A stretch of 64,000 nucleotides of DNA, taken from the NCBI RefSeq assembly GCF_964194025.1, contig NC_134471.1, positions 16,120,001-16,184,000 of the forward strand. The letters are read 5' to 3'. This stretch comes from Convolutriloba macropyga (Eukaryota). Of this stretch, positions 3,466 through 10,809 are shown piece by piece. Position 1 is the stretch's first letter. Each line of letters begins with the position of its first letter. The notes under the pieces were generated by a model. The model saw only the letters and a list, made by a program, of their open reading frames with translations, did not search any database and was not told where the DNA came from. Made by a program: the position numbers and the translations under genes.

Positions 3466-3662
3466 CTAAAAGTTCCAATTTGTTTTTCGTTTCTTGGCCT
3501 TCTTAACCGGCTGCTTTTTCTTTTCTGGACTCTTTGAGGCGAATTTAACAGAAGCAGACACTTTGTTAGCTGAATGTTTGTCCTCTAATTCCTGTTGGTC
3601 ACGTGCTTTGAATCGCGGAAGTTTCAACAAGTTCACTTCGGCTATCAGACACTTGTCCGAAT
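3466..3662 (-). CDS. Carbon-nitrogen hydrolase family gene, terminal coding exon (..SDKCLIAEVNLLKLPRFKARDQQELEDKHSANKVSASVKFASKSPEKKKQPVKKAKKRKTNWNF*)
   Basis: Acceptor cttttcag|AT, phase 1, 197 nt open to TAG. CLIAEVNL resembles the family's C-terminal 'LLxAxIDL' strand. Any exons between 3663 and 6560 are unresolved. Confidence 0.7.
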
Positions 3663-3834
3663 CTGAAAAGGTATTAATTGATATTTAAAGGTATTTTCCA
3701 TGTTTTCGCCCAGTTTGCAGCCCCCCCCCCCCCCCCACTTTTTATGACCCGCAGTTACAAATTATATGTTGTTATATAGCACATTACTATGTAAGAAAAT
3801 AGCACGTGCGCCTGGGGGTCATAAAAAATTTGGA

Positions 3835-3982
3835 TCCGTTTGTGCCCCCCAGCTTAGTGGGTGCATATTATTTGCAACCCCCCGACGCACGTGCAATATT
3901 TTTACATAATGATTTACTATGTAATGACACGTGCTCTGTCACTGGGGGGAGCATAACGTAATGGGGGGGGGGCACAAACGGA
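3835..3982. mobile_element. MITE-like element, family A copy 1 (TIR TCCGTTTGTGCCCCCC)
   Basis: Terminal inverted repeats TCCGTTTGTGCCCCCC / GGGGGGCACAAACGGA. The interior is homologous, in opposite orientation, to 10511-10672. A related half-unit with a poly-C run lies at about 3712-3830. Confidence 0.75.
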
Positions 3983-6560
3983 AAAGATCCAAAATTTTAT
4001 GCTCACTAAGCTGCGGGGGGGGGGGGGGGGCAGAATAGATCCAAAACTTCTTGTGAACTGACTGATTGAACTCCTAGATTTCTAACTCCTAGATACAATA
4101 ATAACTATTCTGAGCCAATAATAAGTATTCTTTTTCAATACTAAGCATTGTGGCGTGCCAAAAGCTGCAGCTGCGCAAACGCATCAAAATTATTCGTTTT
4201 GATTCAAAAGTGAAACAGACCTGCAAGTTTTAAAATCTCAGATCACTGTGGCGCCATATTTTCCTACTTACAGTTCCACATTTCAGAACTTGCAAACTTT
4301 GTGTTTCAAGTATAGGCTACGTGACTCTGCTTGAAGTCACATCGAAATTCTGGCGTAAATCTCAAACCACTACGCAGTTCCTAACGAATGCCCGATTTTC
4401 TCAGAGACTTCATAAGAGTGTCGTAACCTGTGCATACAATTCTTACTGCTGTGATCTTGGTTTCATAAAAGATGACAGTAAACGCAGTGAAATTTTACAT
4501 GATCTACGTTTATAAAATTAAATAAATTAAAATAATTAAAACTGAAACCTGAAGAGAAAATTTTGTCCTGAAATAAAATTTTTCGACAAAATTATAGAAA
4601 GTTAAACCATGCAATGCGAAGTGCGTCCATAAGCCAATGTTTTAAAATGTAAGCAAATGATGAAGCAGCTTTACTTGTTTTGACTTACGTTGATATATTT
4701 CTTAAAGGCAAATTAAACTGAATTAATTTATAGCAACATACCATGATAAGACACGATTTGGTCTATATATTATCAAAAAGTTGGAATTGACCTGACGATT
4801 GAAATGGAAAAAACAAAAATTACTTTATTACATTTCATTTTTACATTGTGATAGGAATTCATAAGATCCATCGAGAATTTATTGTCAAGACAATAGTTTT
4901 AAAAATAAACTCAAACTCTTATAAACTAAATTTTTGTGACTAAGAACAGTTATGTGTTAGCAAGATAAGTAGGTACAAACAAAGTTTGTTTAAGTTCCCG
5001 TCGAAGTACTAAATACTAGCAAATCATAATAAAAGTGACAAATTGCTTCCAAAAAAATTTTTCAAAAAAATCAGCTCAAATTCTTCCATTTCTTCCACGC
5101 TTAAATAAGCCAAACTTTTATCAGATTTCGTACACAATTTAGCGCATTGATTACAAAATTTTTTTTGTTAAAATTCCAAATTTTTTTATTTTGTAATTTT
5201 TTTGTAATTTTTGTAAATTTCTGTTGAAATTTTTTTTAAAAATCAGCGGCTATGAACCAACTTCGCATGGTTTCAGCACTTTTCATATGTCAATATAAAT
5301 ATTGTGCAAGATATGACAAAAGAAGCATATTTTCTCATACTCATAGGCAACGTGATTGTTAAAATAGGCAAAAATAGGCAACCTTCTCATAGATCAATAA
5401 GTTTTATAAATTGATATTTGATAAATGTTACAGAATATGAGCTTCTACTGTCAATGTTGCCAGCTCTTGATTATAAGAATGATTTAAATTTATTACATGA
5501 ACGCTAACGCTAGACTGTAGACTGGTTTTAAAAGCAAAAAATCATTTTGTGTCGAGAAAAATCCACATATTGTTTCTTTAGTGGGAAAAACGGTCACTAC
5601 CTAGCAATTTTTAGCTTATTGCTGCAAACAACACAGCGTTAAAAGTTCTCGCGGTTATCGGTTGGAAATAACATTTGACTTTGAGTTATATAAATTATTG
5701 GAAAAAGAAAATTAATAATTTTTTCAACTTTCTAAGAGGGATCGTAGCGTTATTAGAATTCAAATAGATGACGTATTGAGCAACAGTTCAATTTGATTAG
5801 GAAAGACACTACTAAAAGACAAAAAATCTATTGAGAGCAACAACTAACACATATATGGTTCTTAATGCAGAGTTAGTGAAACAAATTGTAGGTCCAAAAC
5901 TATTCTGTCTCCAAAAAGTTACTTTATTTTTTTTTACTTTATTCAAGTAAGTCAATCTGGCAAATATTCTCTTAAAAATTAGATGTTTTTAGTTCTATTT
6001 ATTACACTAAGAAACTGTTGAACTAATGGAAATTGCACTCACAACAAATTAACATTAGAAGAAAAATAACGTGAACATTATAGCAGCAATATTTTTAACT
6101 CTTTCCTTCTTCCGGGATTTGTGTGAACTCCTGTGATCTGATAAACTTTTTCTTAGGTATTCCAGACAGTCACAGAAAACCAGCAATTGATTATAAGGTT
6201 GCGAGGTGAAAGTTTTCAGCCATTTCAGAAACGGAGACTATTAATGGCCAGAAATCTCAAAAAAGCCAAAAATTTTAGAGATGCCCACACAAAAAAAATC
6301 CCTCGATCTATTATAAAACATTTCATTCAAAAATTTTCTTCATTTTTATAACCTTTTTCTCGAAAGATGTTCGCTAAAATTTCAAGGAAAGAAAGAAGAT
6401 TTTAAAAATATAAATTCATGCATCATTATTCCCAAGGGTTCAGAAGCAGAATAATTTTCCAGGAATTTACCACAAAAAGAGAACGTGAGCTTACTTATAC
6501 ATTTTGCACACAACTAAAAAAAATTAGTCAGTACGCAAAAAAAACAATTTTTTTGCTAAC

Positions 6561-6725
6561 TGTGTTCGTTGTAGTAATTGTGCATGAAGAACATGTGTTG
6601 TGATTGTATGAATCTGGGCTGTGGGATGACACTGTTTGACCTTGTAGAGAGTGAGAACAAAATGTCACACCTGTCCTTATACTTTCCACACACTTCTTCA
6701 ACTTTGCTCGTCTCCAGACAGATAC
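6561..6725 (-). CDS. Carbon-nitrogen hydrolase family gene, exon 5 (GICLETSKVEEVCGKYKDRCDILFSLS...; nucleophile Cys)
   Basis: ttgatag| acceptor and |gttagc donor, 165 nt, phase 1 to 1. Joined to exon 4 it reads RIAFGICLE, equivalent to 'RIGLLICYD', followed by RCDILF, equivalent to 'GADIL'. Confidence 0.85.
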
Positions 6726-7212
6726 CTATCAAGTTTGAACAATTTAGATGAACTATCAATTATTGTTATCTTTGAAGAATCGTACTAAAAGCTCATTCAA
6801 AGTAACCTTGAAAGATTCTTAATGCTTCGTTAAATATCTTGCAAGTCTTAAGCGAGAGTTAATGCTAACAGATACTTACAAGATAAATATATTTTTTCAC
6901 TTAGCAAGATTTCATATTACGCCTCAACTCTAGCAAGATTAACAGTAATAGTTTAGAAACTTTCTTGTTCTTGTTTTATTTTGTTTTATTTAATTTTGTA
7001 CAATAATTTTTTGTCAAAAACTCATTATTGTAAATAATCCGCTTGATACATGCATCCAACATTCTGGGCGGATAAACCTGAACAAAATAACATTTTAAGA
7101 GTGAGTTATAATCGCAATTAGACCAATCCTTACTTTGGCTTTGCATTTTCTCGGGGGAAAAATATGGAAGCTTTTTTTCCTCGATAACTTTTAGAGTGCA
7201 CTCAAAACTAAC

Positions 7213-7363
7213 CGAATGCAATCCTGGCTCCGTATTTCCATGTGAAAATGGGAGCAGAGTTAGATCCCCTGTTGAATATGGAGTTGGCGGAGGAGTAGTC
7301 GTCCCGACTGTGAACAAAGTCCAGCCGTGTCATTGGGTCGTAGAAACGGGCACAGTTCGAGAC
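7213..7363 (-). CDS. Carbon-nitrogen hydrolase family gene, exon 4 (VSNCARFYDPMTRLDFVHSRDDYSSANSIFNRGSNSAPIFTWKYGARIAF)
   Basis: ttgctag| acceptor and |gttagt donor, 151 nt, phase 0 to 1. Matches 'YNxAxxxDPxG..YRKxHL....FxxG....PVF....RIG'. Confidence 0.85.
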
Positions 7364-7853
7364 CTAGCAACGTCATCAAGTTGTTTTATGAGAACCCAGG
7401 GTTGGGTCACAATCCCGAAACAGGCATTAGCTGGACAGACTTGGTTCAAGGACAATGAGGTCCGTTTCGACCCAAGTTAACAGTTTGAACGAAATTTTGG
7501 TCACGCCTTCCATTAACGCAAAGTGTCTACGTTTCTGAATTTAAGCAAGTCGAATAACAAACAATTAAAATTTATTGAAAAAGAAAGTAGATTCGGCACT
7601 AACTATGCCAAAGTTGTGACTTTTTGTTCTAAATAATACATTTTGCCAAGTTCGCTGACGCTCAGCTGATTAAAAACAAAGGGGCCACAACGAAATGGAA
7701 ATTGAGCAAAAATTAAAACAAAAAAGAAGCCGTTTTTTGACAATTCAAACTTATTTGTGAAAGTCCAACGACTACAACTTTTTTCAGAGACCCCATAATA
7801 GGAAGTTGTATGTTGATAACTTTTTGAATTATGAGTTCAACCCGGACACTAGC

Positions 7854-7962
7854 CTTATCCGACTGTGAGTCGTACTCTGCATAGCCATACAGGACAGCCA
7901 CTTTGAATCTGTTTGCCAAATCTGCAATTCGACTGTTCAGCTTCTCTTTCTCATACAACACT
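7854..7962 (-). CDS. Carbon-nitrogen hydrolase family gene, exon 3 (VLYEKEKLNSRIADLANRFKVAVLYGYAEYDSQSDK)
   Basis: tttag| acceptor in phase 2, matching exon 2. IADLANRFKVAVLYGYAE resembles 'IxxLAxxxxIAIVxGYxE'. The donor is probably non-canonical AAG|gctagt, phase 0. Confidence 0.82.
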
Positions 7963-8449
7963 CTAAACTCAATGAGAGACATTTACTTACGTCACGAAAC
8001 GTGTCAGAGAAAATTATTTCAAAACAGAAAAAAATTCTGTTGTTAGCTGTGATTGGAGATTGAAACTAGTCATATCCAGTATCCGGTTGTTTTACTCTCC
8101 TCGATTATAAAAAAATCTCAGTATAACTCCCGAAAAACTGTTCAATTGGGTAGTTACAGCCTTCTAGGCTAACCAATTTGAGAAATCCTCGATAAAAATT
8201 AAGCTGAGAAACCACATTCTGCAAATTAATCAGTTAATTTAATGCATAGCTACTCGGTATGTCACGCAGTAACTTCTAAATAAAAAACCGACTTTCCAAA
8301 AAATGATGTCTGACAGCTTGTAAGTTTTATACACATTTCCGAACTAAAGCTCTCATATTTAGAGAAGAAATCTAGATCATCAGCTAATTCTGAATGATGA
8401 TCTAAGAAAATTGAGGAAGGGAAATGAAACAAATAAAAAGCTTAAGGAC

Positions 8450-9665
8450 ATCACTTGTGACAGAGCGAATTTTTGGTCAAACACTGCTTTCTCACTCTAT
8501 TTTAAAATTGGAGTGAAAATGATTCAGGCCATAACCACACGCTTTTCGCTCCACTTCCTGTTTTCAATCGACCAAAATCGTCGCTTCAATTTGACTTCAA
8601 AAATCATGACAGTGTGTGAACAGATCTTTAAAAAAAACATAACATGATAAGTCTTGGCCAACGAATGAAAGAACTTTCATTGACTAAACAAAAAAAATCA
8701 GAACAAGAATGGACTATGAATGGACTTTGGAAAAACATTTAGAAAACATCCGAGCCACATGAAAAAAAAGTGAAATTACCACATGTGGACTAAAAACAAC
8801 AAGCGAGAGAGCAAATTTTGTTCAAACACCATTGTCTCTTTCTTTAAAATTAGAGTGAAAAATTTTAACTCCGCGAAACCACTCGCTTTTTCAACTCGCA
8901 TAGCAGGACAAGTCCGGAAACAATTAAATTGACAAAACCAAAAAACTAGACCCTGAATTGAATTGAAAACGACTTTGGAAACCTTTTGCTAAAAAATATT
9001 CCTATGAAAAAAAACTTTAAAAAAACAGTACTTTTAAAAAATCTTTGAAAAGATGTCAAATTACCGCATGTGAACAAAAATTAGCTCTCAAAAACGGAAA
9101 ACTAAAACATAGCAGTACAAGTCTAAAAAACAAACTTTATAAAAACATTACAGGACAAGTCCTGAAACAATTCACGGAAATTTCATTGACAAACCAAAAG
9201 AGCTACACCCTGAATTGACTTTAACGACTTTAAAAACCGTTTGCTAAACAATTCCTATGAAAAAAGCTCGAAAAGACAGTATAAAATTTGCTCTCAAAAA
9301 CCGAAAACTAAAACATAGCAAAACAAGTCTAAAATATGCTTTAAAAAACGTAGCAGTACAAAATCTGAAACAATTCAATCAAATCAAAAACAAATCATGA
9401 AACATTAAACATCGAAGTCAAATTGCCACATGTGGACAAAAGATGACAAGAAATAGAGCAAATTTTTGTTCAAATAGCGTTCTCGCACTCAACTGTAGAA
9501 TTGGAGTAAAAAAATTCACGTCGCAAAATCCATCGGTTTTTCTTAATTTCTCGTTTTGGCGTGATCAAAATCACCACTCCAATTTGGTTTCAATAATCAC
9601 GAAATGTTGTGAACAGAAAAAAAGAGCGCCCCTTTACAATTCAAATTCTTTAAAATGTAAGAACT
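8450..9665 (+). repeat. Dispersed AT-rich repeat family with internal duplications (in intron 2 of the hydrolase gene)
   Basis: The block GAGCRAATTTTTGKTCAAAYA...TTCTCRCTC...AATTGGAGT...CAAAATC...CAATTTG occurs at about 8460-8640 and 9455-9665, and partially at 8810. The motif AGCAGGACAAGTCC recurs at about 8900 and 9150. Same family as 11030-11635. Confidence 0.7.
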
Positions 9666-9896
9666 GAAAATTGAATAAATCGTTTAAATCAAAGCACTTT
9701 GTTTATTTATCTCCAGACCATTACTGGCATTCGCTCTGGTTTAATATCCGTAATCCTCCTGACTAGACTACCATGTCTCTCATTATTGATGACAACATCT
9801 TTGAGTAAAAAAAAAACAATTTGCAAGAATTTCAATTCAATTTTTCGTTATTTGACCGAAGCATAATTTAATGTATAATGTACATCTACGGCTTAC

Positions 9897-10031
9897 GTAT
9901 ATTCGACGAATTTGGACCGGCTCATCTGGTATCCGGTTGTGTACAGCTCCGGAAAGAATGCCAGATCTGATTTGGATGCATTGCAGAATGAGAAAACTTC
10001 AGCAATGTCAGTCAACACTTCCTCTGGCGAC
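9897..10031 (-). CDS. Carbon-nitrogen hydrolase family gene, exon 2 (SPEEVLTDIAEVFSFCNASKSDLAFFPELYTTGYQMSRSKFVEY; catalytic Glu)
   Basis: ctctccag| acceptor and |gtaagc donor, 135 nt, phase 2 to 2. DLAFFPELYTTGY is the hallmark 'DLxxFPExxxxGY' motif. Confidence 0.9.
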
Positions 10032-10285
10032 CTGGAGAGAACATACGAGTCTTTCCAACTACATTTTAGCCCCCTCCCCCCCGCCCCCGCCCACCCGCTA
10101 CCGCTTATTGGTCATATAACGTACAGCACCGCCTCCCACCGCCACCACCCGCCGTTAATTACAATTACCCTAAATAAACAATAATGGGAGCTATATAATT
10201 TCGTGGGGAGCTGGGGAAGGCTTATAGTTTGTAAAGGGAAAAACCCAAACATGCAATTATCTAAGAGGAGAAAAATAGCTTATCC

Positions 10286-10425
10286 GGGGTCTTTCCCATT
10301 ATAGCCCCCCCCCCCCCCCCCCAAAGCGTTGCGGTCAGATAACCTATAGCCCCCCCCCCCCATCATGGTAAATATACCATAATGGGGGCTATATTTTCAT
10401 GGGGAGCTATAATGGGAAAGACCCC
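10286..10425. mobile_element. MITE, 140 bp, perfect 20-bp TIR, 6-bp TSD TTATCC
   Basis: GGGGTCTTTCCCATTATAGC ... GCTATAATGGGAAAGACCCC, flanked by TTATCC at 10280-10285 and 10426-10431. Confidence 0.85.
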
Positions 10426-10510
10426 TTATCCCTCTGTCAATTTTTAGTTATATAAGTTGATACTTTTAAGACCCATTATGAACAATAGTAAAAATAAACA
10501 TCTGACTTTT

Positions 10511-10672
10511 TCCGTTTGTGCCCCCCCCCCCCCCCCCCCCAGTACGTTATGCACCCCCCAGTTACAGAGCATGTGCCATTACATATGAACTCATTTTGTT
10601 AAAAAAATATGACACGTGCGTCTGGGGGTGTCATAATAATATGCGCCCACAAAGCTGGGGGGCACAAACGGA
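10511..10672. mobile_element. MITE-like element, family A copy 2
   Basis: Same TIRs as 3835-3982 (TCCGTTTGTGCCCC..GGGGCACAAACGGA) with a homologous, inverted interior. Lies in intron 1 of the hydrolase gene. Confidence 0.75.
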
Positions 10673-10714
10673 AGAAAAATCCAAAAATACCAAAAAATCT
10701 GTGAAAAAACTCAC

Positions 10715-10809
10715 CTTTTTATTCGCTGTCGCGGATTTACGACTGAAATCACCAACGTCATATCGGGAGTGTTACGCACAACCAACGGCAGTTCCACTTC
10801 ACCCGCCAT
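10715..10809 (-). CDS. Carbon-nitrogen hydrolase family gene, first coding exon (MAGEVELPLVVRNTPDMTLVISVVNPRQRIK)
   Basis: ATG at 10809, 95 nt, strong donor AG|gtgagt in phase 2 matching exon 2. MTLVISVVN corresponds to the first beta strand ('MKIALxQ'). Confidence 0.8.

Follow-up and report, generated by a model that had tools for sequence, protein, structure and literature searches.

Can a nitrilase fold in which an arginine stands where the catalytic lysine belongs be the product of a functional gene and, if so, what might such a protein still do? The question is raised by a minus-strand gene at positions 3466 to 10809 of a 64,000-nucleotide stretch of the genome of the acoel Convolutriloba macropyga (assembly GCF_964194025.1, contig NC_134471.1, positions 16,120,001 to 16,184,000 of the forward strand; this whole stretch is termed the window below and is numbered from its first letter), the norm in the nitrilase superfamily being a Glu-Lys-Cys triad within a Cys-Glu-Glu-Lys tetrad (PMC11732141). 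We hold with high confidence that the locus is a functional, single-copy gene of six exons, with counterparts in at least three other genomes, and that it encodes a diverged CN_hydrolase with Glu60, Arg133 and Cys166 at the triad positions, in which the second glutamate is lost, the C-terminal half is trimmed and a basic tail is present. This conclusion is carried by four intact orthologous reading frames evolving under purifying selection, by profile matches to the CN_hydrolase family that take in all three triad positions, and by an alignment with canonical enzymes in which the spacing up to the arginine is that normally found up to the lysine.

Gene model and orthologous genes

Joined in the order of translation, six minus-strand exons of the window give an in-frame open reading frame of 852 nucleotides, that is, 283 codons and a stop. 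The exons, the codons discussed below and the longest intron are as follows.

10715..10809, minus strand: exon 1, with the start codon at 10809-10807, encoding the N-terminus and strand beta-1 (RNTPDM..LVISVVNPRQRIK) and followed by a GT donor
9897..10031, minus strand: exon 2, helix alpha-1 and the predicted catalytic-Glu motif KSDLAFFPELYTTGYQM, with the Glu60 codon GAG at 9949-9947
7854..7962, minus strand: exon 3, encoding LYEKEKLNSRIADLANRFKVAVLYGYAEYDSQSDK, with a GC donor at 7853-7852 directly after it
7213..7363, minus strand: exon 4, encoding the NCARFYDP strand, a hairpin and SRDDY
7306-7304, minus strand: codon CGG of Arg133 in exon 4, at the catalytic-Lys position
7303-7298, minus strand: codons of Asp134 and Asp135 in exon 4
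7285-7280, minus strand: codons of Asn140 and Ser141 in exon 4, opposite the lost second Glu
6561..6725, minus strand: exon 5, with the FGICLETSK motif, the Cys166 codon TGT at 6720-6718 (the nucleophile position) and Glu168 two residues after the cysteine (C+2)
3663..6560, minus strand: intron 5, 2898 nucleotides, GT-AG, with G/C-run repeats resembling miniature inverted-repeat transposable elements (MITEs) and no coding exon of the nitrilase-fold gene
3466..3662, minus strand: exon 6, the terminal exon, encoding the last strand SDKCLIAEVNL, a Lys-rich low-complexity tail and the C-terminus KKRKxxWNF, with the stop codon TAG at 3468-3466

Exon 5 also carries the family-specific motifs LFSLSTRSN, PQPRF and FFMHNYYNE. 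All acceptors are AG and all donors GT, with the exception of intron 3, which is a GC-AG intron (donor AAG/GCTAGT, the slash marking the splice site) and has GT at the same position in Symsagittifera roscoffensis. A search of the C. macropyga genome (assembly of 1,175,981,408 bases) for further copies found the gene to be single-copy. The initial annotation of the locus had placed five exons and a terminal exon here on the minus strand; these are present in the sequence, and the peptides that it quoted (FFPELYTTGY, HSRDDY and AFGICLETSKVE) are all encoded by them. Its start of the terminal exon at 3663 breaks the frame and has to be moved to 3662, with the final acceptor AG at 3664-3663, upon which exon 5 (phase 1) joins exon 6 directly in frame. 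The same annotation had supposed an exon to be missing from 3663-6560, a supposition that falls away, as exon 5 is spliced directly to exon 6 and the same junction recurs in three other species and in a gene model predicted by NCBI. An extra exon within intron 5 is ruled out by this direct junction in all four genes, the intron in question measuring 2898, 596, 383 and 69 nucleotides, respectively.

The orthologous genes were found with exon 5, the only exon with which an exhaustive search was run (phmmer, 1.84 billion representative proteins). Just three proteins matched, all of them fragments called on metagenome contigs of ENA (L011, L012 and L013), and a motif scan of JGI metagenomes returned one further contig (L014), which holds the 5' half of the L013 gene and overlaps L013 by 19 nucleotides. 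Four genes were thus compared, namely those of the window, L011, L012 and L013 together with L014. The three other genes, read with tblastn and by their splice sites, have complete frames of 291, 273 and 286 codons, free of stops and frameshifts. A cluster look-up identified the L011 protein (P0126, 291 residues) as NCBI XP_063723839.1, 'uncharacterized protein LOC134851613' of S. roscoffensis, to which our exon-derived model is identical, residue for residue. The gene is therefore not wholly hidden, as had been claimed, since NCBI already predicts this orthologue, under the name of an uncharacterized protein.

Three intron positions, with their phases, are common to all four genes. L011, L012 and L014 all conserve exon 1, with no intron between it and exon 2, so that exons 1 and 2 are one exon in the three other genes, and exons 3 and 4 are one exon in two of them, L012 and L013 reading without interruption through the junction (...DK/[VI][SY]NCARFYDP). 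Every junction of the window gene is confirmed in this way, because each corresponds either to a shared intron or to uninterrupted coding sequence elsewhere, and the exon 3/4 junction with its GC donor is confirmed because two species read straight through it. Pairwise protein identity among the orthologues is 58-70%, and 129 of the 302 columns of their alignment are invariant.

The gene family seems, from the sequences searched, to be restricted to a few genomes. A profile search with the N-terminal piece returned the same two species only, a search for homologues of exon 4 gave no candidate under a length filter that excluded full-length kin, and a metagenome scan with the exon 5 alignment gave no match. 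The ELYTTGYQ motif was likewise absent from the bacterial and archaeal genomes scanned, and nothing thus points to a recent bacterial donor. The flanks of the gene share no conserved neighbours with the L011 and L012 contigs in the DNA compared.

Several features of these loci may be recorded alongside. In L011, a run of six Gly codons (10100-10130, residues 186-191) is inserted at a cysteine that the other three genes conserve (RCDIL becoming RGGGGGGVDLL). In L012 (6296-6913, P0002), the metagenome gene caller continued across the intron and translated a TGA in frame as Trp; the stored P0002 therefore cannot be obtained from the contig with the standard code, and is an annotation artefact. 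As for the window introns, MITE-like repeats with long runs of G or C and a common core (…CCGTTTGTGCCCC…AGCTT…) lie at 3694-4040 in intron 5 and at 10290-10680 in intron 1, and include one pair in opposite orientation, with arms at 3835-3883 and 10624-10672 (49 nucleotides, 86% complementary). Intron 2 holds several degenerate families of direct repeats, spaced 200-360 nucleotides apart, at 8768-9466, which resemble a decayed tandem array, and intron 5 an A-rich, low-complexity sequence at 5177-5214.

Nitrilase-superfamily membership and the triad positions

On profile comparison the encoded protein is a strongly diverged CN_hydrolase and hence a member of the nitrilase superfamily. Single exons gave no match to Pfam or PDB, and small orthologue profiles, built from pieces or from the whole protein, gave chance matches or none against PDB. 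With longer uninterrupted orthologue pieces, PF00795 was the best Pfam family each time, the pieces matching in collinear order (profile positions 8-48, E = 0.027; 65-112, E = 0.0052; 13-54, E = 0.11), and the full-length S. roscoffensis protein P0126 matched PF00795 over residues 36-169, where the Glu, Lys-site and Cys positions all lie, with 36.3 bits (E = 4.9e-9, cut-off 23.2). We then draw on a reference set of 133 CN_hydrolases, made up of animal NIT2, prokaryotic Nit2-like proteins, the Nit2-like and beta-ureidopropionase-like proteins of C. macropyga and paralogues of five prokaryotes. Alignment of the four orthologues with this set by hhalign gave a probability of 94.7%, P = 6.3e-8 and a score of 58.6 over 248 columns, some 15 standard deviations above 200 column shuffles (15.2 +/- 2.8, maximum 27.4; the reversed alignment scored 25.0). 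The signal is confined to the first 165 columns (P = 1.4e-8) and becomes significant only with these more diverse references, the comparison with Nit2 proteins alone giving P = 0.059, which is not significant. A local hidden Markov model of the 133 CN_hydrolases scored the four orthologues at 19-34 bits, with 24.6 bits for the window protein, and the nearest neighbours in a protein language model are CN_hydrolase clusters for 94 of 100 neighbours of the N-terminal piece and for all 100 of the middle piece. The assignment to the superfamily made in the initial annotation is borne out by the full-length orthologue, which passes the Pfam cut-off, and by the hhalign score far above the shuffles.

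The triad positions were mapped by MAFFT alignment with 43 canonical enzymes, Glu61, Arg134 and Cys167 of the S. roscoffensis protein corresponding to Glu60, Arg133 and Cys166 of the window. All 43 references have Glu in the column of Glu60, which lies in the FPE motif and at the position of the general base, and all 43 have Cys in that of Cys166, in FGICLE, which the alignment places at the position of the nucleophile. Opposite Arg133, 41 of the 43 have Lys; two positions before Arg133 stands a His that matches a His/Phe/Tyr column of the references. Counting from the conserved Asn of YN[ST]A, the catalytic Lys follows after 17 residues in 128 of the 133 references and after 16 in four others; the distance from this Asn to the Arg is 17 in all four orthologues. 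The proposal that Arg has taken the place of the triad Lys is upheld by the Lys-rich MAFFT column and by this spacing, and Glu-Arg-Cys at the triad positions is, as judged from sequence, well supported. The second glutamate of the tetrad is gone as well: its column (Glu in 40 of the 43) lies opposite Ser140/Asn141 of P0126, and at this position the orthologues carry Asn, His or Ser. The motif after the cysteine had been described as remodelled; it is less altered than that, the acids at C+2 (ICLE against ICYD or CWE) and C+7 being retained in the MAFFT alignment.

Past the cysteine the protein is abridged. From Cys to the last strand there are about 61 residues, against about 93 in Nit2, that is, some 30 fewer, and the gaps relative to Nit2 fall on the helix after the FSLST segment and on the G.S.I..P.G hairpin, between FSLST and DKCL. 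The last 45 residues are of low complexity and include 14 Lys or Arg, with the KKRKxxWNF end found in all four species. Structure prediction was run on the S. roscoffensis orthologue, standing in for the spliced window protein. When the alignment was supplemented with 43 CN_hydrolases, AlphaFold2 returned a model with a per-residue confidence of 85-98 for residues 20-170 and 45-87 beyond, in which the cysteine is followed by no more than one helix and three strands. This model, biased as it is towards the supplied alignment, matches formamidases, amidases, Nit2 and NitFhit, with Foldseek E values down to 5e-13 and VIA-align Z scores of about 20 (root-mean-square deviation 3-4 Å over 212-228 residues).

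C. macropyga also has ordinary nitrilase genes. A Nit2-like gene (L001, G000:C4:48039193-48039975, 293 residues), about 63% identical to its nearest named relatives, the NIT2 proteins of animals, and a beta-ureidopropionase-like gene (L002, G000:C3:32121788-32122540, 286 residues) each match the family profile as one uninterrupted open reading frame, unlike the intron-rich Glu-Arg-Cys gene. A third PF00795 match (L003, G000:C13:576075-576407) is the N-terminal domain of a NADSYN1-like glutamine-dependent NAD synthetase, with a partial second copy of the exon about 1.5 kb downstream; an origin of the window gene as a paralogue of L003 was considered and rejected, L003 being NADSYN1. The Nit2-like, beta-ureidopropionase-like and NADSYN1 genes all have the normal RK motif.

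Selection on the gene and possible uses of the pocket

The gene is under purifying selection. Pairwise Nei-Gojobori counts between the orthologues gave a proportion of synonymous differences (pS) of 0.75-0.89, which is saturated, against a proportion of nonsynonymous differences (pN) of 0.18-0.27, and thus pN/pS of 0.24-0.34 at saturated pS. The ratio of nonsynonymous to synonymous substitution rates (dN/dS) is well below 1, because pN is low while pS is saturated, dS itself not being estimable. Glu60, Arg133 (within RDDY) and Cys166 are invariant in all four orthologues, and so are the flanks PELYTTGYQM and FGICLET, in spite of synonymous change beneath them: the Arg codon reads CGG, CGG, AGA and CGA in the four species, and the codon of the catalytic Glu is GAG or GAA. 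The view that the gene is not dead, put forward when the locus was first annotated, is borne out by four intact orthologous frames and by the comparison of pN with saturated pS. That the frames should instead be a pseudogene or neutral remnant, or chance open reading frames resembling nitrilase motifs, is barely credible: it would fit the want of an RNA run for the stretch and of Pfam or PDB matches for single exons, and it is contradicted by the shared intron phases of four intact frames, by the pN/pS values, by the prediction of the same protein by NCBI in S. roscoffensis, by a Pfam score above the gathering threshold and an hhalign score about 15 standard deviations above shuffles, and by an identity of 58-70%, which excludes the contigs as copies of one genome.

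What the protein does is less firmly settled, and here we lean, with some reserve and on the sequence evidence given, towards non-canonical turnover or none, that is, a pseudoenzyme or an altered thiol chemistry. Since the oligomer interface is altered in part, along with two of the four catalytic residues, turnover as in an ordinary amidase is unlikely. With part of the canonical dimer interface trimmed and both the Lys and the second Glu gone, normal amide or nitrile turnover would most probably be lost. Conservation is strongest around the pocket, which would make the pocket the target of selection, and the protein may work through it as a ligand- or peptide-binding pseudoenzyme or, in another use of the same pocket, as a slow and possibly single-turnover former of thiol adducts. 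The KKRK motif, if it acts as a nuclear signal, would direct this action to the nucleus.

A still-efficient enzyme is a less probable reading of the same conservation. Here a Glu-Arg-Cys triad would drive C-N or acyl-transfer chemistry by way of the thiol, with Asp134 and Asp135 holding Arg133 as the oxyanion stabiliser; conceivable substrates are an N-terminal Asn or Gln, and a small amide. Invariance of Glu60, Cys166, the C+2 acid and their flanks across saturated divergence is what would be expected of a nucleophile in use, the arginine keeps a positive charge at the exact Lys position, the invariance of RDDY suggests a co-adapted site, and the top match among solved structures in a sequence search is an amidase, Nta1p (E = 0.0023 over 109 residues). 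Set against this are the loss of the second tetrad Glu as well, the C-terminal half, which in canonical enzymes forms the dimer interface beside the active site and is here trimmed and unrecognisable, and the literature, in which our search turned up no natural Glu-Arg-Cys member. The search, which was for a pseudoenzyme or an Arg variant in the nitrilase superfamily, found neither, and we know of no natural Glu-Arg-Cys member that has been characterised. Granted that the account of the gene and its family is right, we rate non-canonical or no turnover as somewhat probable and a still-efficient Glu-Arg-Cys enzyme as an appreciable, lesser chance. In its fullest form, a natural nitrilase-fold enzyme with its Arg held by an Asp-Asp pair and no second Glu, whose targets in acoels may be protein N-termini or substrates in the nucleus, the proposal is a tentative one.

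It is improbable that the triad is canonical in three dimensions, with a diverged region misaligned and another lysine, either the invariant Lys171 at C+5 or Lys113, reaching the site. HMMER alignments do end before the Lys region, and hhalign and MAFFT differ there by one residue. The hairpin from Asn to Lys, however, spans 17 residues in 128 of 133 references of several branches, as does that from Asn to Arg in four of four orthologues; the residue at minus two from the Lys, an aromatic one or His, has its counterpart too, and Lys171 aligns with the conserved, non-catalytic Arg of ICYDxRFPE.

The preferred reading, that of a functional CN_hydrolase-fold gene with Arg at the Lys position and non-canonical or no turnover, has the following points to contend with. 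Among RNA runs, none was found that covers the stretch. Through one inserted gap, the hhalign register is off by one from that of MAFFT, putting Arg133 opposite the Arg of 'RK' and Asp134 opposite the Lys, so that the replacement of the lysine could be Asp; this shifted register is disfavoured because the 17-residue spacing is conserved, and the Lys is missing from the triad position in both. From the Cys motif onward, the protein alone scores 18.5 in hhalign (P = 0.04, not significant), and exon 5 alone was not recognisable by Pfam, PDB or language-model features. AlphaFold2 with an alignment of orthologue fragments only gave a mean predicted local distance difference test score (pLDDT) of 34.7, which is unusable; the model obtained with 43 CN_hydrolases added (pLDDT 75.5, predicted template modelling score 0.78) leans on that alignment, and its consistency with the fold is not independent proof. 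An invariant Glu and Cys with conserved surroundings fit retained catalysis as well as they fit binding, and it is from the motif itself that KKRK suggests a nuclear signal.

On either outcome the family is of consequence. Glu-Lys-Cys is treated as the signature of the superfamily, and in at least four genomes this family, which has retained Glu and Cys, has fixed Arg in its stead, under strong purifying selection on the gene. Should the protein be an active Glu-Arg-Cys enzyme, it would be a catalytic variant that has not been described for the nitrilase superfamily, the oxyanion Lys would be replaceable in nature, and the RDDY motif would point to the compensating residues. If it is inactive, it would be a conserved nitrilase-fold pseudoenzyme, probably addressed to the nucleus and with its pocket preserved, of a kind that, going by the literature search, is undescribed. 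The 'uncharacterized' S. roscoffensis protein gains a name and a testable hypothesis, and C. macropyga a gene model; wider impact is moderate because the family seems limited to a few genomes.

Comparison with known systems

In the predicted model, the structurally nearest known proteins are Nit2/omega-amidase and NitFhit (PDB 7elf, 4hg3 and 1ems; Z about 20, root-mean-square deviation 3.3-3.8 over some 220 residues). With canonical CN_hydrolases the acoel protein has in common the collinear series of beta-1, alpha-1, the FPE-Glu strand, alpha-2, the YN[ST]A strand, the hairpin and the G-I-C-x-[DE] nucleophile elbow. It differs from them in having Arg for Lys, Asn, His or Ser for the second Glu and about 30 residues fewer after the cysteine, as well as in its additional 45-residue basic tail with KKRK..WNF, and it is no more than 13-19% identical to any of them.

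In the Arg/N-degron pathway of yeast, the N-terminal amidase is Nta1p (PDB 5hyy and 5b62), the only nitrilase-superfamily chain to emerge from a plain PDB sequence search (E = 0.0023, 20.6 bits, residues 18-126 against 21-130). The two proteins have NP[QR] after beta-1, FPE..TGY and GY.E.D in common. Nta1p itself has a normal Glu-Lys-Cys triad, the likeness ends before the Lys region, and Nta1p counts 459 residues in the PDB chains, with long insertions absent from the acoel proteins, which have 283-291. The similarity thus covers residues 18-126 only, short of full length, and the intact triad of the Nta1 branch is not found, its Lys being absent. Given the modest E value, a specific kinship with Nta1 is a lead from sequence and not a result.

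Conserved pseudoenzymes in general offer a further parallel, in that they too retain an enzyme fold under purifying selection after losing residues deemed essential for catalysis. The acoel protein may, by contrast, still be catalytic, since it keeps its nucleophile as well as its general base, the changes being confined to the Lys and the second Glu.

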